NCBI GenBank assembly: GCA_964035545.1
Contig: OZ037773.1
Location: 6,415,751 to 6,479,750 of the forward strand
Direction: 5' to 3'
Length of the DNA: 64,000 nucleotides
Source: Bugula neritina
Lineage: Eukaryota; Animalia; Bryozoa
Positions 1 to 12,738 of this stretch are shown here, in pieces. Both the position numbers and the translations under genes were made by a program. The notes beneath the pieces are model-generated. The model saw only the letters and a program-made list of their open reading frames with translations, did not search any database and had not been told where the DNA came from. The number at the start of each line of letters is the position of its first letter. The first letter of the stretch is position 1.

Positions 1-417
1 AAGGCGGATCAGAGCGTCTTAGGATATTACAAGCAGCTGCATTATAGTTGGATAATAAAGTAGCTGGAAAATTGGGAAATAGGATGATGGGTAATTACTT
101 AAATAACATTAATATAAATGTACACCATTATATATAATAATATATAATATTATATACTATGATATATAGAGATAATATATTGCATTATATATTCACTACA
201 TACATTATATAAATATAAAAAATAACATTCAGAAGTTGCAGTAACAAAAAAATTAATTAGCCAAAGCTTTTTAATTGCTTTAGTCTTAGACCATACGTGG
301 CAACATATATACTAGTATAACTTCTAGTAATAGTCGATTTGGGCTCTGAAAATAAATTACATCTTAAATAAGTTTGATCACACCTGTCTCTACTAATAAT
401 TGTTGCCAACAGCTTAC

Positions 418-3400
418 CATTCAAATCTTTCTGAGTCTTTAGATTTTATGAGTTTTAGAAATAAGAATATAGTCAGGCTTCCAATCCACAAGAATACACA
501 CAGGTCTGCAAGATGCATATGTAATGTAAATAATACATATGATATATTAAAATTATACAGAGACAATACAAATAGCATAGAATTAATATACTTATGTAAG
601 ATATAACATTATATATAAAATATTCAATCAAAAAGACACATACAATTTGTTATAGAAATTTAGTATATACTCTAATCTCAAGGCAAATAGTTTATTTAAG
701 AAGCGCAAATGCAATTTTATATTTATAAACATACAAATGGGAACAGTTATTTAATAATCAATATATTATTCAACTGGAATAATAAGAATGAAGTAAAGCC
801 TCACCGAAAGCTTGAATAAAGAAAGCTTGGGCAATACAGCGAGAGTCATTGATTCCAATATCTCCATCATGCTACATCAGAAATAGTTTACTAATTATTA
901 CCTAATACTGATGCTTATCATTACGTACTAGCAAAGTAGAGACTTTGATGTGAGTGTATAGGGCAAGTTTACAGACAAGAAAACTGCAGCATGATACACT
1001 ACATCTGATGCTGCCAGCTCTAGCCTAATATACACACAAATTGAAACTATACAAATGCCTGTTATGAACAATAAGCAGTGCTATAATAATGACTAGCAGA
1101 GTTTAAAATGTATACAGCAAAGCATAGCTAATTAAGTTTACTTCAACTCTGTTTTTATCAGTATTTCTTTGAAATCTAAAATACTAGCCTTAAAGGTCTT
1201 AATGCATGCCTCACAATATCAACTTGCTACAATACTGCACAGTAAATACGTATAACACTTACTACAGTACTACAGATTGAATACGTACACTTACCCCTAG
1301 TTTAAACTACAATTAATACAGCATAGTAAATGCATACACATATCCCTAACTTACTAGTACAGTGCTACAAAATAAATACACATACTAACCCGGAAATAGA
1401 CAATTGAACTGAGTAAATAGATACAACACTTACTGCAGCAGCACAGAGTAAATACATATACTTACCCCTAACCTACTTACACAGTCGTACAAAGTAAATA
1501 CATATACTTACCCCTAAGTAGACAATTGAACTGAGTAAATTAGTCATTAGAAGGTTGCAGAATATTCTCTACAAAATACAAATAAATGTTAGCACAACTC
1601 CAACAAAACAAACTAAAATATCTAGCTTCAAAAACAATACATTTTCACATGGTGCTTTACTAGTTTATATATTAGATCTTTTACAAGTGATTTAAATAGG
1701 ACATATGTATATAGCATTTTGATTCAACTATCAGGTTTATCATATACTATGCAAAGGTATTCCTAGGTGGTTATTTAAACTGTAAGAGTAAGAAGGAATA
1801 TAATATCTATGTAACTATATTTCATTTCAAATGGCCACGAAACAAGAATACAAATATTTATAAACTTTGTAATTATTATTAAAATAGTTGCTTGGTAAAA
1901 GTTAGGAGCAATTACTGTTATTATTTTTATAAGAGCTGAGGGGAGTTATGTCTTTCACTTTATGGAATTGTCACAGGATCATTGAACTAAAGCTAGAAAT
2001 GGCTCCTATAATCCAAGTAATTAACTTTTACTAATACTATAGTTGAAAGCACAAGATAAATGTAGAGCTTAACGAGGAAGTTGGAGATTAGAGGTAGGAG
2101 TAAAACCTGCCATCTACTAAGTATTGTAATAGAGAGAACAGACATAGCTGGGATAGTTTCAGGTAAGCTGTCATGTTTGTTAAAAAGATAAAAAACATGA
2201 CCTGCAGGTGTGTATAACAAGAAGTATGAACTGTAATGTGTGTACTACACATCATAATATGATGTTAGCATAAGATGGCTGAAGGTAAAAGGAAAATGGC
2301 TGTTGGTACAAAATGGCCGCTGAGACAAGATGATCAAGCTAGTATAAGATGCAGTCACAACCTCTTTTTATAGACAGAGCCAGATAGCCTAGAGATTGTC
2401 AAAGTTTAGGATTGCAAGATCAACACCAAGCAGTATCTAAAAAGTGGCCTAACCCCAATAAATTAAACTAGCTCCCTATAATAACTAAACACTATAATAG
2501 AAAAAAATCTTATTTAAAATCTAGCCCAAATGAGCACTATTGTCATAAACTATTCTGTATATATGTTTTAAGATTTAACTTTTTGTTATACAATTTATCA
2601 AAACTATTAGCTTGCTTTTTAAATTGACAATTTATTGACCTTCAATGTTGAATAAGAATTTAAAACTCTATTAACTATAACAGAGTCACAAGTTTCACCT
2701 ATTTTGGTTGTTGGGGGCCTTTACTGTGCTACATGCCTATAAGTTTGAGCTGCTGCAAAATGAGGTGCAGTAGGAATTTGAGCTAGCCTAAGCTCTTGAC
2801 TTCCCTTAATGAAACTTTGGTTTGGGAAGCTGCGTTGAAATTCTTGCTATAACATAACTTGTTTTGCTACATTTCTAATCTAGAACACAGGCTTTTCTTG
2901 ATTTCTCTGTTACTGCACCTATCTCAATTGATCACACTGCTGTACAATTATGCATATCTTGTTTCTGTAGTACTTCTAGTAGAACTGTAACTAAATCTAA
3001 AGTTATACTATTACAATCTGAATACAATGGCTGCCCTAGCTTGTAATAACACACTCTACTCACCTGGTTAAAGAACTTGTATTTTTGAAGAATGAAAAGA
3101 AGAATCAAAGTCAAACTGACCACCACAATATTGATGGAAAATAAAACATGCTTCATTACTTGAAGTTTGTCCTGAAAAATGGAAAGGATTATATATTATT
3201 AAGATGTATAAATATGGAGTAGAACATGACGTAGGCTGTGGAAGGCACAACTAGTAGGTAAAGTAAAATCAGGATGTTAATATGCTGAATCAGTTAAATT
3301 ATCTTTGCGCTACTTTGGAAGACAAGAATCTCCAGTTTTCAGATTGAATGAGGTTGCACTGTTGCAGGGGCTTTTTGATTGTTTGAGGAAAGCTTTTTGT

Positions 3401-6400
3401 GAAAGCTTTTGCAATAGATTTTTACTGGTAGTCAGTATAGCTCAATTGTCTTCTTGTTAAAGATGCAGGCTACTTAAACTTTATTGTTGAAATAGTTGTT
3501 GAAGTTTGAGTTTTGTGAGAGAAGTAAACTGTTGGCATTAGGCAGAGTTGTAGCCTGCTTTTGTGTCCTCCATCCATTTACCCTTCATTAAGTGAATCAC
3601 AATACATACAGCATCCGTACTGTCACAGTAACACTTATCTTGAGATAGGCATCCATGTCACACAGCATATTATATTATTATGTAATAGTTATTAATTCTT
3701 ATCAAAGAATTACCATGGTGTAGTCTAACAATACAATAAATGCTATTTCATAGACACACAGTAGCACTTAGTGTAGCTGTTTCTATGAATATTATAATGA
3801 TGTAATGTACACCTGATTTTAGCTTGCCACTAGAGAAGTATTCATAAATTGCATACCAACTGATAAGGCAACTTAACAAACCTTATCTAGATAAAATAAA
3901 AAGATGCAACATAACATCGACTCAACCTTCGTTCTAAAACTTTGCTAATACACATAAACAGCTATAGACTCTTCAACACAGTGAGCTAAAAGCTAAAATG
4001 TAGGGATTGAAACAAGTTCATGAGGAGGTAATTTCTTTTGTTGAATTCTTTATGCAACACGAGCTTTTCCCAATATTTTTCCATTACAGAATTTAACTGG
4101 TGGTGGTGGATGGTGGAACCAAGAGCTGTACCAGTTTACACTACGGACCCCAGCATCCAAGGACTGATGGCAATGATGTACTGTAGAGAAGTTCCCATCA
4201 GTCAAGACTTCATACTAACCTCCAAGCGGTCACCACTGGTAACTGGGTGTAGATACACCCAGGCTAATAGTATGAGGATCTATGGGTTGATCACCCAGAC
4301 AACAATCCATCCAGAAACGTGACACTCTGAGAGGGCGAATTACTCGGCCAGTCACTGCGACTACTGAACTGCTGTGCTCGTCCTGGACACTCCTTGCCAG
4401 CACAGCGTACTTCTTTAGTGGAGAGGGGTGCTTAAGCAACTGACAAAACCCTAAGTATCCTTAAACTTCTTGTCAGCATAACCCGATTGAATCATGAAAA
4501 GAAAAATGAACACGAAATCATACTGGCAGGACGTCGCCCAGGATAAAAAGGTCCAAATTTCTAAACTCAACCTTGCATCATGGAACATACGAACAATGCT
4601 AGACCGGGAGAGCACAGAAAGACCTGAGAGAAGGAGTGCAATCATTTCATCTGAACTACAGAAGTATGGCATCGACATTGCAGCACTGAGTGAAATCAGA
4701 TTCAAAGATACAGGTAAAATTCGTGAAGAGTCAGGCTACACCATTTACTGGAGTGGCAAAACTGCATCTGAGCGCAGTGAGTCAGGCGTGGCCCTTGCTA
4801 TCAGGAACGAACTTGTTTCGAGACTAATCGAAGAGCCGAAGGCTATAAGCGACAGACTGATGTCACTCAGGGTTCCTCTGTCTGATGAGCGATGGTGCAC
4901 TGTGATAGCTGTCTATGCTCCCACGATGACAAACAGCCAAGAAAACATCAACAGATTCTATGACCAACTGAATCAGGCTCTAAGATCAGTCCCAGCAGCT
5001 GATAAGATCTTACTCATGGGGGACTTCAATGCTAGGGTTGGACAAGATCACTCAACCTGGCCCGGTGTGATAGGCAAGTATGGCTGCGGAAACCTGAACT
5101 CCAATGGTGAACTTCTGATCTCAGTCTGTAGTGAACATCAACTGTGCATTACCAACACCTTCTTCAAGCATAAACCAGCTCACAAGTTCTCTTGGATGCA
5201 CCCGAGAAGCAAGAACTGGCATCTCATCGACTTTGTTATTACACGACAACGTGATCTACCAGACATTCTAGACACAAGGGCGATGAGAGGGGCGAATTGC
5301 AGTACTGACCACATCATGATCAGGTCAAACGCTAAGCTCCGAGTGAGGAGAAAAATGAAGAAAGGGAGAACACCTTGCCAGAAGCTGGACGTTTCTCGAC
5401 TTAAGAATGAGGAAGTAAGACAAGAACTGGAAAAGTCCCTTGCTGGGAAACTGAACTCTGCTCCAGAGGGCGTGGAGAGTAAGTGGAGAGCATTCAAAGA
5501 GATAGTTTATGCAGAGTCAAAACTGCACCTCGGCACTGTCAGCAGGAAACATGAGGACTGGTTTGACGAGAATAATGATGAGCTTCAAGAACTCATCCAG
5601 AAGAGAAACAAGGCCAGAACAGACATGTTAACCAGGAATACTCGCTCGAACAAGTCAAAGCTTAGAATGGCTGGCAGAAAACTCACAGGAAGATGCAGGG
5701 AGCTCAAGAACGACTGGTGGTTGGCAAAAGCTGCTGAACTGCAACGGTTTGCTGACACCAACGACATGAAAGGCTTTTACCAAAGCATGAAAACTGTTTG
5801 GGGTCCAGGAGTGAGTCATCCTGACCAGCTCCTGGCCAGTGACAGCTCAACACTCCTGACAGAAAAACAAGATCTTCTAGCGAGATGGACAGAGCATTTC
5901 AGCAAGCTACTAAACGAGACTCCAGATATTGATGACAACATCATTGAGAACCTGAGACAAGCTCCCATTCAGGACTGGATGGACGATTGCCCAGATATTG
6001 AAGAGATCATCAAGGCAACTTCGATGCTAAGTGAAGGGAAATCACCTGGCTCTGATGGCATTCACCCGGAGGTTATCAAAAGGGGAGGGCCCAAACTAAT
6101 AAGTACTCTCCATGAGATAATAAAGGAGGCATGGAAAACTGCTGTAGTCCCTCAAGATTGGAAAGATGCCCAACTTATAACCATCTTCAAAAAAGGTGAT
6201 CGGAAGCTGTGCGGTAACTACAGAGGTATCTCCCTGCTCTCAATTCCCGGTAAAGTTTTTGCTCGTGTCCTTCTGAATAGACTGACATCATATGCAGAAA
6301 ACATCCTACCCGAAACTCAGTGTGGATTCCGTAGTGGAAGGGGAACAGCAGATATGATATTTGCACTGAAGCAGATACAGGAAAAATGCATCGAGCAAAA

Positions 6401-7960
6401 TATGCCCCTGTACATGGTCTTCATTGACTTCACCAAAGCGTTCGATACTGTTGATCGGGCGACCCTGTGGAAGATCTTACAGAAACTCGGTTTTCCTAGT
6501 CACTTCACCAATCTTATCAGCGCTCTCCATATTGGCATGAAGGCCTCAGTCAAGCTGAAAGGGGAGTTATCTGAGTCGTTCCAAGTCAACAATGGTGTGA
6601 AACAAGGATGTGTGTTGGCTCCAACGCTATTCTCTATTTTCTTATCGGCTGTTCTACAGCACGCATTTGAAAACTGTGATAAAGGCGTCTGGATTCAAAG
6701 TAGACCTGGAGCTGATCTGTTCAATGTGAACCAATACAAGTCAACAACAAGAACACAAAAAGTATTGGTTAGAGAACTCATGTTTGCTGACGACACTGCC
6801 TTCGTTGCACACAGCCATGGCGATGCACAGGAATTAGTCAACAGATTCGCCAGAGCTTCCAAAGCTTTTGGTCTGAAGATCAATATCAAGAAAACGGAAA
6901 CGCTCTACCAACCGGCACCTGGAGCCCATGACAGTGGTGACAGTATCTGCATAGATAATGAAGACCTTGCCAACGTTAATAGGTTTAAATATCTTGGGTC
7001 TACAGTGATGTGCAACAACAAGATGGATGAAGAGATTCATACAAGGATGTCCAATGCTTCAATCTCATTCGGCAGACTAAAGACCAAAGTGTGGTACAAT
7101 AAGGATCTGTCATTCAAGACCAAGTGTACAGTGTACAGAGCCATTGTCCTGTCCTCTCTGCTCTATGGAGCGGAGGCCTGGCCTGTATACAGGATAGCCG
7201 CTCACAAATTCAACACCTATATGATGAGACATCTACGCCAGATCTTGAACGTGAAGTGGTGGGATTTCATCTCGAATGAGGAGACTCTAGCACAGACAAA
7301 TCTACCCAGCATGTACGAACTACTCATTCACAAAAACCTGAGATGGGCTGGTCATGTGCATCGAATGGATAACTCTAGATTACCTAAGCAAATTCTCTAT
7401 TCACAACTGAAAGAAGGCACCCGTGGTGTTGGCAGGCCGCGACTGAGATTCAAAGATACCGTTAAACGCAATCTAAAAGCTCTGAAGATCCCTATTGGTA
7501 GCTGGCAATCTCTCAGCAAAGACAGATGTAAATGGAGGACCATGATTCACCGGAAGTCATCTTCGGACACGAAGGACAGCTAATGATGAATGAATGAACA
7601 GAATTTAACTTTTATGAAATGCTGGGTATTATAATAGAAACAACCTAGCTTTCAACATATACAGATGCGAGGTTTGATATTTTGACTTATAGCAACTTTA
7701 ACCGAACTTTTATAAAAGAAATGCTTTTTTAGTTATTCATTTACAATAGAACTTTCTACCCACAATAATTGTTTCATTTCACCTCCTAACTTTGAACTGT
7801 ATTAATACAAGAATAATGCTGATCTATAAATAACACATCTTTACTCAACTACCTTGAATATCCTTGGAAATATATTGTAATAACCTGACTGTACGAAAGT
7901 CTGTCCACTTACACATTGTCCTTCCGGCAGCCCACAGGGGGAGGCGTAATCTGCTGCCAT
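418..7960 (-). CDS. cAMP receptor-like (CrlA/GPR157-type) 7TM receptor, 5' part; possibly a pseudogene, continues off the window's left edge
   Basis: GT-AG exons: 7913-7960 (MAADYASPCGLPEGQC), 3064-3171 (DKLQVMKHVLFSINIVVVSLTLILLFILQKYKFFNQ, TM1), 805-871 (HDGDIGINDSRCIAQAFFIQAF) and 418-505 (DLCVFLWIGSLTIFLFLKLIKSKDSERFE, TM3). Phases match within the pairs 7913-7960/3064-3171 and 805-871/418-505. The C..QA.F.Q.FD....LW...T motif and the KY.FF.Q end of TM1 resemble animal CrlA-like GPCRs. The only TM2 candidate (about 2362-2436, ILLGVDLAILNF/QSLGYLA) needs a frameshift. Confidence 0.6.
1238..1540. repeat. degenerate tandem repeat (GTAAATACATATACTTACCCCTAA-like units)
   Basis: Recurring AGTAAATAC..ACTTAC motifs. 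TAGACAATTGAACTGAGTAAAT occurs at 1397-1418 and at 1519-1540. Confidence 0.6.
2813..2935 (+). repeat. dispersed repeat fragment (second copy about 44539-44645)
   Basis: Both loci share TTTTGCTACATTTCTAATCTAGAACACA, plus flanking GTTGAAATTCT and CTGCACCTAT. Confidence 0.7.
4099..4277 (+). ncRNA. HDV-like self-cleaving ribozyme at the RTE 5' end
   Basis: P1 GGTGGTG (4099-4105)/CACCACT (4231-4237) with a G1-U wobble; P2 CTTCATACTA (4208-4217)/TAGTATGAGG (4268-4277); P3 ACC (4218-4220)/GGT (4228-4230); L3 TCCAAGC; P1.1 CC/GG (4238-4239); P4 CTGGGTGT/ACACCCAG; J4/2 GCTAA with putative catalytic C4264. Confidence 0.88.
4494..7583 (+). CDS. RTE ORF: AP-endonuclease + reverse transcriptase (1029 aa, intact)
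   Basis: APE motifs (SWNIRT, ALSE, GDFNARVG, IDFVI, STDH), RT motifs (NYRGISLL, QCGFR, FIDFTKAFD, GVKQG, FADD, FKYLG) and an RTE-type C-terminus (LRWAGHV, GRPRLRFKD). Confidence 0.97.
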   Translation: MKRKMNTKSYWQDVAQDKKVQISKLNLASWNIRTMLDRESTERPERRSAIISSELQKYGIDIAALSEIRFKDTGKIREESGYTIYWSGKTASERSESGVALAIRNELVSRLIEEPKAISDRLMSLRVPLSDERWCTVIAVYAPTMTNSQENINRFYDQLNQALRSVPAADKILLMGDFNARVGQDHSTWPGVIGKYGCGNLNSNGELLISVCSEHQLCITNTFFKHKPAHKFSWMHPRSKNWHLIDFVITRQRDLPDILDTRAMRGANCSTDHIMIRSNAKLRVRRKMKKGRTPCQKLDVSRLKNEEVRQELEKSLAGKLNSAPEGVESKWRAFKEIVYAESKLHLGTVSRKHEDWFDENNDELQELIQKRNKARTDMLTRNTRSNKSKLRMAGRKLTGRCRELKNDWWLAKAAELQRFADTNDMKGFYQSMKTVWGPGVSHPDQLLASDSSTLLTEKQDLLARWTEHFSKLLNETPDIDDNIIENLRQAPIQDWMDDCPDIEEIIKATSMLSEGKSPGSDGIHPEVIKRGGPKLISTLHEIIKEAWKTAVVPQDWKDAQLITIFKKGDRKLCGNYRGISLLSIPGKVFARVLLNRLTSYAENILPETQCGFRSGRGTADMIFALKQIQEKCIEQNMPLYMVFIDFTKAFDTVDRATLWKILQKLGFPSHFTNLISALHIGMKASVKLKGELSESFQVNNGVKQGCVLAPTLFSIFLSAVLQHAFENCDKGVWIQSRPGADLFNVNQYKSTTRTQKVLVRELMFADDTAFVAHSHGDAQELVNRFARASKAFGLKINIKKTETLYQPAPGAHDSGDSICIDNEDLANVNRFKYLGSTVMCNNKMDEEIHTRMSNASISFGRLKTKVWYNKDLSFKTKCTVYRAIVLSSLLYGAEAWPVYRIAAHKFNTYMMRHLRQILNVKWWDFISNEETLAQTNLPSMYELLIHKNLRWAGHVHRMDNSRLPKQILYSQLKEGTRGVGRPRLRFKDTVKRNLKALKIPIGSWQSLSKDRCKWRTMIHRKSSSDTKDS

Positions 7961-8864
7961 GGCAGCTTTCTATCTGAGTGTTGAACTTCCTGTTTGTGTA
8001 CTTCCTGTCTAACAGTGAAGAGACCAGAGGAGAACCTACAGTGTATAACTAACACTAACTACGGCATAACAGACAGAAATATGCTACTATAAAGATGGAT
8101 AGCAAATCATGGCTACTGATTGAAATATATGTGTAATAAAACTAGTTACAAGTGATTCGAGTAGATGATAACATCATTCTATGCTACGGTAGTTGGTAAT
8201 TAATTTTACAGGTCATCAAATGACCCTGAACCAGATAAAGTTATAGTTTATCAGCTTGAGTTTGTTGACAACTTTAACACTTCAAAATCAAATAATGGAA
8301 TTTTACTGTGGAAGGCTCCTCCATGTTAGGGATTCATACTGTCTGTGGGTCATGGGATATAATCCTGAGTGGCTTTGTATGGCTTGCAAAGTTTTAAAAG
8401 CACAAGCTACAGGCTTCGAGTGAAAAAGGGACCAATTTGCACTATCATAAGACCCAAAACATGACACATGTCTATTTTCTTCAGGTAATCAGCATGTCTT
8501 AAAGCTTTTGTTTTAGCCGAATAATATGTCTAAAGCTGTGATTCGGAAGTAGTAAACAAAAATATGTTGTTGAAAGAATTTTTCAAAAATATAGGTGTTA
8601 TTGGCTGTCTTAAGACTGACTTCTCACAATCTTACAGTAACACAATATTAATATACGATTCAAATCTTACCTGAGTTGTAGTAGTGCCGACTGGATAGTC
8701 GGAAGTCTACTATAAATTAGTTGCTACTTACTTAGCGGTCCTTTACTAAAGACCTTCTGCATTTAGTTGTTTGCAATCAGTGAGCACTAATGCAAATACT
8801 ACTGTCAAAACATAATAGCATGCTTGATTGCCGCCGTGATATATGTAATATAAAAGCGACCTCG

Positions 8865-8925
8865 CAGTCACGTGGTAGCATGAATCACGGGCCAATAGAA
8901 GAAAGTCACCTGCGCGTGACCAGAC
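8865..8925. promoter_or_regulatory. putative promoter with E-box (GTCACGTG) and CCAAT motifs
   Basis: Local CpG-rich patch with GTCACGTGG, GGCCAATAG, GTCACCTG and GCGTGAC, just upstream of the likely non-coding first exon of the 7TM gene (minus-strand donor at about 8670). Confidence 0.3.
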
Positions 8926-10796
8926 GTTTGATGGTTATTAATAAATCATTGCGGGGAACTCCAGGTATTGCGAAATTGGGGAGTGAAGTAAGTTTTTTTC
9001 CTGAAGAATGCAGGCACCAGGGGAACAATTGCTTCCAAAGGGTACAATAGCTCATCCCTATAGTAATATTATTATGCGTTGGGTACATTCATGTGTGTAC
9101 AAAATATTTCACAAATATAAAGCTACTTATTATTGCAGTGTTTTTGTATTATTTTGTAATAATGATGAAACTAATTATGTTTAAATGTGATTAAAATGTG
9201 ATTGCAATTTCGAAATGCTAATTGGAGCTACAACAAAATCTCCTAAGAATGCAGTGATGCAGTTCCTTTAGTAAAGTTCAATGCTAAGAGAATATGGCTT
9301 CTGCTTGTGTGAAGATAACTTCCTATATAAATAAGAATGAGGCATTTTATTAGAGAGAAAAAATATAAACTATCTTCGTATTAACTTTAGATCAGTTTCC
9401 TGCTATATTCCACGTTAGAGTTAAATATAGCGACACTGCTATTGCTTTGAACAGATGTGTGAATAGTGTGCAATGACTACCTTCTTCGTGGTGCAGTTAT
9501 TATTGATTCCATAAAAGGCATGTTTATGTTTGTAGTATCAACATGTAGACTAATTGCAACCCATTAGTGGTTACTATCTTTATCCCATGTCATTTTTTAA
9601 ATCAATAATTCTCATGGTGAATTCAGTTAATATTATTGCAATAATTATTCACTATGCATTTACTTGTTATCGAACATGGCTCAAAAAGGCTTTGCACAGA
9701 CATAAAATGTATTCCATTTGAAAGAACTGACAATGTTTTCTACATAGTAATAAAATATCCTGCTTATACTAGTATGATAATATATTGACCCACTTCTTAT
9801 ACAAAACAAAACTGTATTATTTTCTTACTTTCTTTCTGATAATTACAAGCTTGTATAGTTGTTCAAGCATTATAAGAGCTCCATGAAATAAATAGAGAAG
9901 ACAACTCTATACTTTATACTCACAATCTATTGTAACGCATATGGTATAAGACTATAGTCTATAAGGCAAAATAATACTGCAACCGGTCAGCAGATTGAGA
10001 TCTGGGTTTTTCCACAAGATCCCATATAATATGTGACTTGGTTTTTATAATATATTATGACTTGGTTTTTCACATAAAGAAAGATGCATGGAAAGTATAC
10101 AACAAAGTACTAAACCATCCTTCATTTAGACTTGCAACACCTGCTAACTATTTCATCAGTTGGGTGAGAAAATATAAATTCATTGCCAAGGGGCACGAAA
10201 AGCAGCAAAGAATTTGTCTGGTTTTCATATTCATGGGAACTTCCTCATCTATGAAGTAATGGAAATTGCCTTTGTTTGCATGATTTCTCAATCAATTGCT
10301 AGCCCTTCTCCATCACTGTGACCTATTTAAGCCTTAAAACTTGTCTATAACTATTATTGTGTCAGCTTCATAAGCTGAACTCAAAATTCTTGGCATTTTA
10401 GGATATTCACAGAATATATGAAAACTTATACCTTGACTATTTTTGTCTGACAGTAGATCTATATTCTATGTTACGCTTCAGTGACTTATAAATAAATCTG
10501 CTACTATAATACATAGAATGAGTACGAGAAATATGATATCATTATTGGGCACAGTGTAAAAACATCACGCTGCGTGCTTTATGAATACCTGGTTGTAAGG
10601 TTCGGGCACTTAGCTTTGTATATATAATTTGCGCGAAAACAACAACATTTTGTCTAGGACAGTGTACTGAGTGAGATGTGAGCTATGCATACATCATAAT
10701 CAAATAAAAGCCTAATAAATTCACAGCATTATTTATTTTGATTAAGAAACTGAAACGAAAAAAGAAAATGAGTCAATCATGTATTTAGAAGCTGCT

Positions 10797-12738
10797 TCAG
10801 TTTTCTACTTTTTCACAAAAAGAATTGCCTGGCCTGAAAATCATGGCTCTTTTCTTTCCAAGTAATCCTTCATGTTTAGGATAGTAATTACATCTGGTGC
10901 CTACAAATATATTATAAATATATCATATTATTATATTGTTATTCTATTACTATAATATACCAAATTATATTATCATATTGTTATTATATTATTTTATTAT
11001 GATATTGCACTAGTATATTGCTACTATGTTTATGTATAATACCCATATAATTGCTACGTTATATTACGATAACATGCTACTATGTTATTATACATTGTAT
11101 TTATACAAGTATTCTTACAATGATATGCTATTTAATAATCATATTGCCATATTACTAGAGTATACTATTAGTTATAGTATTATATTACTATATAATACGC
11201 TATTGGAGCATTATATTACTATAATATAATGTCACATACTAATATCTTACTACATATCATAAAACTATATTCTTATAGTACTATATTAAGATAATGTATA
11301 TTACTATAATAGGCCTATACTAGAATTCAGTAAAGCATATCGTTAGAGTAACCCAGCTCACCTGGCTCACACCCACAGCTTGTAAAGCCCGGCATGTGGC
11401 AGCTTTGCCCTTCTTTGATGTACTCTACACATGTGCCTCCTCCGGCTTTTATTGCTGAAAGAAATATAATGATTTATTGTTTTATAAATTACTGAATTGT
11501 GAATGCTAATGAGTTGTGTTCTCTTTAAAACTAGTTGATTCAGTTTGATTAAATATAGATTATCAACTAAATACATACCAGCATTTATATTGGCCAACTT
11601 TTTTGCAATAATCATATTAACATGATAAAATTTAAATAAATTTAACTAATTTTTTTCTTGTAATAAAGCAAATTCATCAAATGCTGATAGTATTTTGAAG
11701 ATTAATAATGTTAAACTTTTTGTATCACTCAACTATAAAAACTTTAAAAAATCTTTCACTTACATTCAAAGATCTTTAATTTTTTCTAAACATATAATAT
11801 AATTTCATTTGCTACATCTGATATTTATTTTAAGGGGCAAGTTTCTTATTATTTTCTAGATTATTTATTGTAATATAATAATAGATATAAGAACTTACGG
11901 AATAGACTGGGTCCACCGAAAGAGCCTGACAGGATATCTCTCTTGCTAGCAATCATCCATCTGCTGTTATCAACACAGCAGTGGGTTGAGGGGCATTTGG
12001 AGCTTTCGTTACATGAGTCCTAAATATTAATAGATGTTTGTTAAGATGTGGCAGTCTTGAAACTCAGCGCATCTGAACAAGTCTAATCAGTAGAAATGCT
12101 TGAAGCAGCACCAGGTTGGTGGTCACGGAGTGCTTTAGTGAAAAGAATCTCTAGTTTTGAATTTGGGGCTTGGAGTTTGGATACCAATGTGTATGCAATC
12201 ACTGTATTCAGTCACCGCTAACTCAGTGCTGCTTCTAACGATATTCTAGCTAGTAGAGTCAATAAAATAATAATTAGAAGTAACATGTTTGTCTTGTTTC
12301 ACTCTAGTTGCACTAAACTAACGCAAAGCTATTCTTTAACTCATTATATGCACTATAGTTTATTGAAGCACAACGGTTAGTTGTCATCTCTTGTATGCAA
12401 ACTTATAAAAGAGTAGGCAATAATTGTTGTTTTAAATTATATTTTTCCTCCCAATTCTTTTCAATACTATCTTATTCCTCTTGAGCATATAATGCATTAT
12501 AAAATAATGTAATATAATAAAATACTATATTATAATATAATTACAATATAGTGTAATATATACAATATGATATAGTCTATAATGTAATATAACATATCTA
12601 ACGCTCAGCAGCAGATAAAAATTCTATTAGTTCGCCAATAATTTCATGCCTATGGATAAAGAAGCTTGTGATGAATCTCACCTGACCCAGGGCTAGCCCA
12701 AGTAAAATAACGAGCAGAGTTACTAGAGAGTACTTCAT
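10797..12738 (-). CDS. secreted 10-Cys prokineticin/colipase-fold protein, paralog A (124 aa)
   Basis: Exons 12682-12738, 11899-12019, 11362-11454, 10797-10900 join in phase: MKYSLVTLLVILLGLALGQDSCNESSKCPSTHCCVDNSRWMIASKRDILSGSFGGPSLFPIKAGGGTCVEYIKEGQSCHMPGFTSCGCEPGTRCNYYPKHEGLLGKKRAMIFRPGNSFCEKVEN*. Signal peptide and Cys spacing C-x5-C-x4-CC..C-x9-C-x7-C-x-C-x5-C..C. Confidence 0.9.
12102..12235. mobile_element. degenerate MITE-like element
   Basis: Inverted ends GAAGCAGCAC...GTGCTGCTTC; resembles the element at 45635-45795. Confidence 0.4.

Follow-up and report, generated by a model that had tools for sequence, protein, structure and literature searches.

A putative HDV-like ribozyme with a large J1/2 domain of predicted structure at the head of an RTE-like retrotransposon of Bugula neritina

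We describe here a putative self-cleaving ribozyme of the hepatitis delta virus (HDV) type at the 5' end of a retrotransposon of the bryozoan Bugula neritina. The DNA analysed, called the window below, is a 64,000-nucleotide stretch of contig OZ037773.1 (assembly GCA_964035545.1, positions 6,415,751 to 6,479,750 of the forward strand); the element in it is a young non-LTR (non-long-terminal-repeat) retrotransposon of about 3.5 kb, and its first 179 bases, 4099-4277, make up the ribozyme. The evidence supports a canonical HDV-type double pseudoknot that has all of the nucleotides of the catalytic core, and also supports the coincidence of the predicted cut with the insertion boundary, both in the window copy and in most of its sister copies. 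Judging from sequence comparison, we give a probability of roughly 0.85 to the reading that this is an active ribozyme which cuts at 4098/4099.

The structure had been proposed in an earlier note made from the letters of the window, and every HDV helix could be read from the sequence, in canonical order, where that note had placed it. The parts of the ribozyme, and the duplicated target site on either side of the element, are the following (window coordinates):

4086-4098, + strand: 5' target-site duplication ACAGAATTTAACT, identical to the 13-mer at 7598-7610
4099-4105, + strand: P1 5' strand GGUGGUG, pairing with 4231-4237; predicted scissile bond 4098/4099
4106-4207, + strand: J1/2 peripheral domain, 102 nt, with hairpin 1 (4107-4159), hairpin 2 (4162-4203) and the linker AAGA (4204-4207)
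4208-4217, + strand: P2 5' strand CUUCAUACUA, forming 10 bp with 4268-4277, one of them G-U
4218-4230, + strand: P3, ACC (4218-4220) with GGU (4228-4230), around L3, UCCAAGC (4221-4227)
4231-4239, + strand: P1 3' strand CACCACU (4231-4237), followed by the GG of P1.1 (4238-4239)
4243-4262, + strand: P4, CUGGGUGU (4243-4250) with ACACCCAG (4255-4262), 8 bp, loop AGAU
4263-4267, + strand: J4/2, GCUAA, with the putative catalytic C4264
4268-4281, + strand: P2 3' strand UAGUAUGAGG (4268-4277), perhaps extended by 3 bp
7598-7610, + strand: 3' target-site duplication, identical to 4086-4098

P1 closes on a G4099-U4237 wobble, and P1.1 consists of C4222-G4239 and C4223-G4238. The structural features that mark the HDV class are found here: the order of the helices, a J4/2 with a C followed by adenosines, an L3 of about 7 nt with its U/G and CC, and a G-U pair at the cleavage site. 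The genomic HDV ribozyme has the same helix order, with U, CC and G in L3, a P1.1 of two pairs, C then AA in J4/2 and a G-U at the cut; unlike the window's ribozyme, it is part of a circular RNA replicon, its P2 has about 7 bp and its J1/2 a few nucleotides. In the window J1/2, given as about 100 nt with a hairpin of its own in the earlier note, measures 102 nt and does contain that hairpin, its stem formed by GACUGAUGG (4162-4170) and CCAUCAGUC (4195-4203). P2 may be prolonged by UCU 4279-4281 pairing with AGA 4205-4207, with A4278 bulged, as RNAalifold proposed when no structure was supplied; the two inner pairs of this extension are invariant and all three barely vary, so that it is unproven. 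When the fold is constrained to the HDV helices, its nested part comes to -55.5 kcal/mol and P1 to about -9.4 kcal/mol, against -58.7 kcal/mol for the best nested minimum free energy (MFE) fold, and by these rough figures the HDV fold is energetically competitive.

Since the 5' copy of the target-site duplication ends at 4098, the element starts with G4099, which agrees with the earlier note's placing of G1 directly after a 13-bp duplication. In the 216-Mb genome assembly, 12 copies share 99-100% identity across the 5' region and are joined by older subfamilies; ribozyme cores number about 26 altogether, in five subfamilies. Seven of the 12 near-identical copies start at the same G (GGTGGTGGTGG) in unrelated flanks; another three start within 1-2 nt of G1, and the remaining two are truncated by about 20 nt. 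The boundary is backed by target-site duplications of 9-13 bp in the window copy and in L005 and L007. Three copies have an A in the place of G1: in L004 it is part of the target duplication, in L008 it is part of a neighbour's tail, and in L010 it follows a 10-bp duplication, as either an extra or a changed base. A search of the genome with the core pattern ACCTCCNNGNGGTCACCACTGG, allowing up to 2 mismatches, gave 22 matches, versus 0 for the reversed control, and a covariance model that we built from 8 cores (R1) found 26 sites, including those of subfamily C, which was not in the seed and scored 65-74 bits.

Covariation across genomic copies, which the earlier note had named as a check, bears out the pairing. 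In the alignment of the five subfamilies from this genome 91.3% of the pair cells are standard pairs, versus 33-46% when the partners are slid, and 7 of the 10 P2 pairs have changed on both sides. The same ribozyme, with a long J1/2, stands before the open reading frame (ORF) in relatives L057, L058, L059 and L063, whose proteins share 83, 73, 67 and 53% amino acid identity. In the cross-sample alignment that includes such relatives, 92.9% of the cells are paired (P1 97%, P1.1 96%) against 26-53% for the slid controls, and 16 of 29 pairs are altered on both sides, values that none of 500 shuffles attained. In an alignment of 21 sequences fitted to the model, 91.8% of the cells pair and 12 of 17 pairs have compensatory changes, and RNAalifold, run on a plain MAFFT alignment without being given the structure, recovered P2, P3 and P4. 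P2 has 8 of its 10 pairs altered on both sides in these wider comparisons.

The most distant of these relatives, L063, has GUUGGUU/AACCAAU in place of GGUGGUG/CACCACU in P1, compensated on both strands, and all of its differences in P2 and P4 are compensated as well. In L058 the first P3 pair is G-C in place of A-U, and at one P1 pair U-G stands for U-A. P4 differs in length among the subfamilies and keeps its outer 4 bp. Alongside these changes, the U, CC and G of L3 are invariant in 12-15 divergent sequences, the G, the C (C4264) and the AA of J4/2 are invariant in all of the aligned sequences, and the GG of P1.1 is likewise invariant. The pair at the base of P1 is G-U in seven, G-C in three and A-U in one of the 11 relatives that have letters there.

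Several results weigh against this conclusion. No Rfam model matches anywhere in the whole window at the gathering thresholds; in E-value mode drz-agam-1 (RF01787) reaches 23.1 bits (E=0.025) on the P2-P3-P4 core, its gathering score being 37, and it is also the best Rfam match in L058, again below 37 at 27 bits. The HDV_ribozyme, CPEB3 and drz-Agam-2-2 models gave no match in E-value mode, and the last of these (RF01788) found nothing at E<=10 in 3950-4450. The window sequence is outside the narrow family RF01787, whose 37-bit threshold it misses. The Rfam models miss the ribozyme because a J1/2 of 100-160 nt parts P1 from the core; that of drz-agam-1 expects a short J1/2 and therefore misplaces the 5' strand of P1. 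The best Rfam match is to an HDV-like family, and we have counted it for a ribozyme. Of the model or descriptor search suggested in the earlier note, then, the Rfam half yielded a sub-threshold drz-agam-1 match and the descriptor half did find the site. That descriptor was deliberately loose (J1/2 up to 260 nt) and was written after the data had been seen; the ribozyme at 4099 is its sole site in the 64-kb window, and on both strands of 40 simulated 64-kb sequences it gave 0.2 hits per replicate (128 kb). Because it also matches simulated sequence, the motif match taken by itself is weak evidence, and the weight of the case lies in the boundary coincidence, the covariation and the 22 versus 0 matches of the core pattern. 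A likeness to HDV arising by chance, with no function, would sit well with the descriptor rate, with the sub-threshold Rfam scores and with a z-score of -1.62 for the nested MFE of 4099-4277, a value that is not significant and comes from a method that cannot model the pseudoknot; it does not sit with covariation in P1, P2, P3 and P4, with conservation down to 53% protein identity or with the exact match to the insertion boundary. The comparative data effectively refute it, and we leave it next to no probability. Further points on the same side are that P1 or P3 pairs are broken in the older copies L013, L047 and L046, and that P1 covariation comes from a single contig, L063, since GGUGGUG/CACCACU is unchanged in all of the other relatives, including further metagenome loci, 8 by one count and eleven by another. 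No ribozyme core is recognisable by model R1 or the descriptor in L062, L064, L066, L104 and L105, which have amino acid identities of at most 62%; in these the ribozyme may have been rearranged, replaced or lost.

A more serious alternative is that the fold is a structured 5' untranslated region (UTR), descended from an HDV-like ancestor and now engaged in translation initiation or in binding the element's own protein, with the start at G4099 set by an internal promoter. The uniform 5' end in 7 of the 12 copies would fit a fixed transcription start equally well, and conservation in the 5' UTR does extend well beyond the ribozyme; roles akin to those of an internal ribosome entry site, and in protein binding, have been proposed for R2 ribozymes (PMC6765202). 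The available RNA data are assembled Logan contigs from four runs, of uncertain RNA status, and cannot show the ends of RNAs. Their coverage of the element begins at 4100 or 4134, with the flank 3700-4098 uncovered in 4 of 4 runs, and one contig extends from 4100 upstream into a different flank; because contigs break at repeat borders and show no ends, this coverage is neutral as to cleavage. A Logan contig for L058 comprises one extra T and the whole element from G1 to the tail, as a collapsed repeat would also look. Against a 5' UTR structure without cleavage stands the invariance, in 12-21 divergent sequences, of nucleotides that matter for catalysis only, namely C4264, the U and G of L3, P1.1 and the paired G at the cut site. 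Moreover, a structural role alone would not tie the start of P1 to the first base of the element, and RTEs are reported to be without promoters of their own (PMC6765202). We regard this alternative as decidedly improbable. A different difficulty lies in the register of P1, the GGT repeat permitting a second one at 4102-4108 with equal complementarity. The ribozyme might then be active mainly in that register, cutting at 4101/4102, or in both, with progeny losing or gaining GGT units; the same 7-bp P1 results from either, and elements of different copies and subfamilies do begin with different numbers of GGT units, between 2 and 4 (L028, L041, L045, L047). None of the 12 young copies begins at the equivalent of 4102, though, and the second register would overlap the first 2 bp of predicted hairpin 1 (4107-4159). 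For these two reasons the cut at 4098/4099 is favoured and the second register seems very improbable indeed, with occasional slippage possible in view of the varying GGT count. A nested alternative fold, in which the GGT-repeat 5' strand pairs inside J1/2, also counts against the ribozyme fold.

With an active ribozyme cutting at 4098/4099 as the preferred reading, the element would be transcribed from upstream DNA and its RNA would fold into the nested double pseudoknot, P1/P1.1/P4 on the one hand and P2/P3 on the other. C4264 in J4/2, together with a Mg2+ held by the U-G pair of L3, would catalyse scission 5' of G4099. The RNA so released would begin at the first base of the element, and after target-primed reverse transcription that base would become the first base of new copies. 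What the comparisons show is the fold with its conservation and covariation, the invariance of the core nucleotides and the agreement of G1 with insertion boundaries; we infer the cleavage, the dependence on read-through transcription, the role of J1/2 and any part in translation. RTEs are described as lacking promoters of their own and relying on co-transcription (PMC6765202). It is established that HDV-like ribozymes head R2, R4, L1Tc, Baggins and RTE elements and that they cut where the element begins (PMC3774820, citing Ruminski et al. 2011; PMC6765202), and the processing of R2 and RTE 5' ends by such ribozymes, as stated in the earlier note, is in accord with both sources.

Of particular relevance is the ribozyme drz-Agam-2, from RTE elements of Anopheles gambiae (Ruminski et al. 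2011, cited in PMC3774820). Its J1/2 is structured and has short linkers, and together with a P2 of 12 bp it 'pinches' P1 and P2 and raises the speed of cleavage almost 1000-fold (Webb et al. 2016, PMC4908430). Like the window's ribozyme, drz-Agam-2 heads an element of RTE type; it cuts at the first base of that element, as is predicted here, and its large J1/2 with short linkers has a predicted counterpart in the window. Its host lineage differs and it has no sequence-level match to the window. Its P2 has 12 bp, against 10 bp plus a possible 3 bp in the window, and its J1/2 is a single P1.2 helix, against two predicted hairpins that span about 100 nt in the window and about 160 nt in L063. 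When J1/2 was folded alone, for the window and six divergent relatives, two hairpins separated by a linker of 1-4 nt were always obtained. The layout is the same throughout, with hairpin 1 starting one base after P1, then the linker, hairpin 2 and a conserved AAGA leading into P2; the stem sequences themselves differ among subfamilies, and the z-scores of the fold range from -0.3 to -4.2, that of the window being -1.98. The 102-nt J1/2, with its two hairpins and linkers of 1-4 nt, and the long P2 would probably hold P1 next to P2, in the manner of the 'pinch' model for drz-Agam-2.

Two other published ribozymes are instructive. The L3 of drz-agam-1, UCCUCGU, is almost the same as the UCCAAGC of the window, and its J4/2 has CUAA. 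The R2 5' ribozyme (Eickbush and Eickbush; PMC3774820) likewise frees the element's RNA from a co-transcript, with the cut setting the 5' junction. R2, however, is confined to 28S ribosomal DNA, has another type of endonuclease and depends on RNA polymerase I, whereas the window's element is dispersed and encodes an apurinic-type endonuclease; in many species, too, the R2 ribozyme cuts upstream of the junction, while the cut predicted here is at the boundary. In an amphioxus relative (L065:359-483; Branchiostoma, GCA_015852565.1) a compact HDV-like motif precedes, by about 520-640 nt, an ORF for an endonuclease and reverse transcriptase that is 45% identical to that of the window. Its 7-bp P1 is GGGGAAA/UUUCCCC, its P3 ACC/GGU, and its L3, UCCUAGUC, starts with UCC; it differs from the window's ribozyme in its J1/2 of ~5 nt and its much longer P4 region, and model R1 does not match it. 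Elsewhere among the distant relatives, at L062:1-170, L064:690-800 and L066:690-800, GGCTAA is kept, with a GGGAGCnAACCC hairpin directly after it.

The ribozyme is a new lineage and not a new kind, in that its mechanism and its large-J1/2 architecture have already been published for drz-Agam-2 (PMC4908430), and it leaves the accepted picture of the processing of such elements as it was. To the known HDV-like ribozymes of RTE-type 5' ends it adds a well-supported and apparently active lineage, present in the Bugula neritina genome and also in several assemblies from metagenomes and transcriptomes. Its subfamilies form a natural series of J1/2 and P2 variants suited to probing the 'pinch' model, and annotators can take the ribozyme as the mark of where a full-length copy truly begins. 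One more speculative reading, which we think unlikely, is that the (GGU)n run makes this a register-slipping ribozyme, in which alternative registers, or pairing with the conserved CACC/CAUCC motif in J1/2, could tune cleavage. If that were true, slipping could alter the inherited GGT count and seed (GGT)n microsatellites at the heads of elements, and the large J1/2 would be a regulatory or protein-binding platform and not merely a clamp.

The element as a whole occupies 4099-7597, 3499 bp between the two target-site duplications. Besides the ribozyme it consists of the following:

4494-7583, + strand: single ORF of 1029 amino acids, apurinic-type endonuclease then reverse transcriptase (Pfam)
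7584-7597, + strand: 3' tail of short repeats, TGATGAATGAATGA, immediately 3' of the stop codon

The Pfam domains of the ORF are Exo_endo_phos (7e-10) and RVT_1 (1.3e-35), and a search with its protein gave 1144 relatives at E<=1e-20. In the flanks, 1-4098 and 7600-10800, long ORFs are absent. Elements of the RTE clade characteristically have one ORF for endonuclease and reverse transcriptase in about 3.2-3.5 kb, a minimal 3' UTR and, instead of a long poly(A), short tandem repeats at the end. Size, single ORF, near-absent 3' UTR and short-repeat tail together fit the RTE clade, and the element may be called RTE-like, the assignment coming from architecture rather than from a tree. The tails of sister copies are (ATGA)n or (ATG)n, and A-rich in two. 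At window 4284-4298 and 4347-4362 there are a GGG-N6/7-CCC hairpin, just 3' of P2, and a block GGCCAGTCACTGCGAC; the block is kept with small variations across the subfamilies, down to relatives of 53% amino acid identity. Protein binding or a role in translation are possibilities for this hairpin and block.

Some of the copies have unusual ends. The start of L008/L027 (G000:C1 about 27,909,870), like that of L047 (G000:C5 about 12,225,490), abuts the (ATGA)n tail of another element, an arrangement that suggests either insertion into a sister's tail or template switching. In L009 (G000:C3 about 21,377,914) ~25 nt of the element's own first bases lie inverted between a 13-bp duplication and G1, a junction that is a 5' inversion or snap-back. 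L005/L050 (G000:C8 about 13,126,480 and 13,129,984) has ~50 nt of the 5' flank repeated immediately beyond the 3' target duplication, owing either to a local tandem repeat as the target or to duplication of the element together with its flank. L044 (G000:C9 about 590,440-590,600) carries more than 15 GGT units at its 5' end and resembles a microsatellite seeded at the head of an element. Three of four clear target-site duplications begin with CAG, that of the window doing so after a first A which is maybe the tail's own, and the base preceding G1 is T in 6 of 7 full-length copies; both biases may reflect a target preference of the endonuclease.

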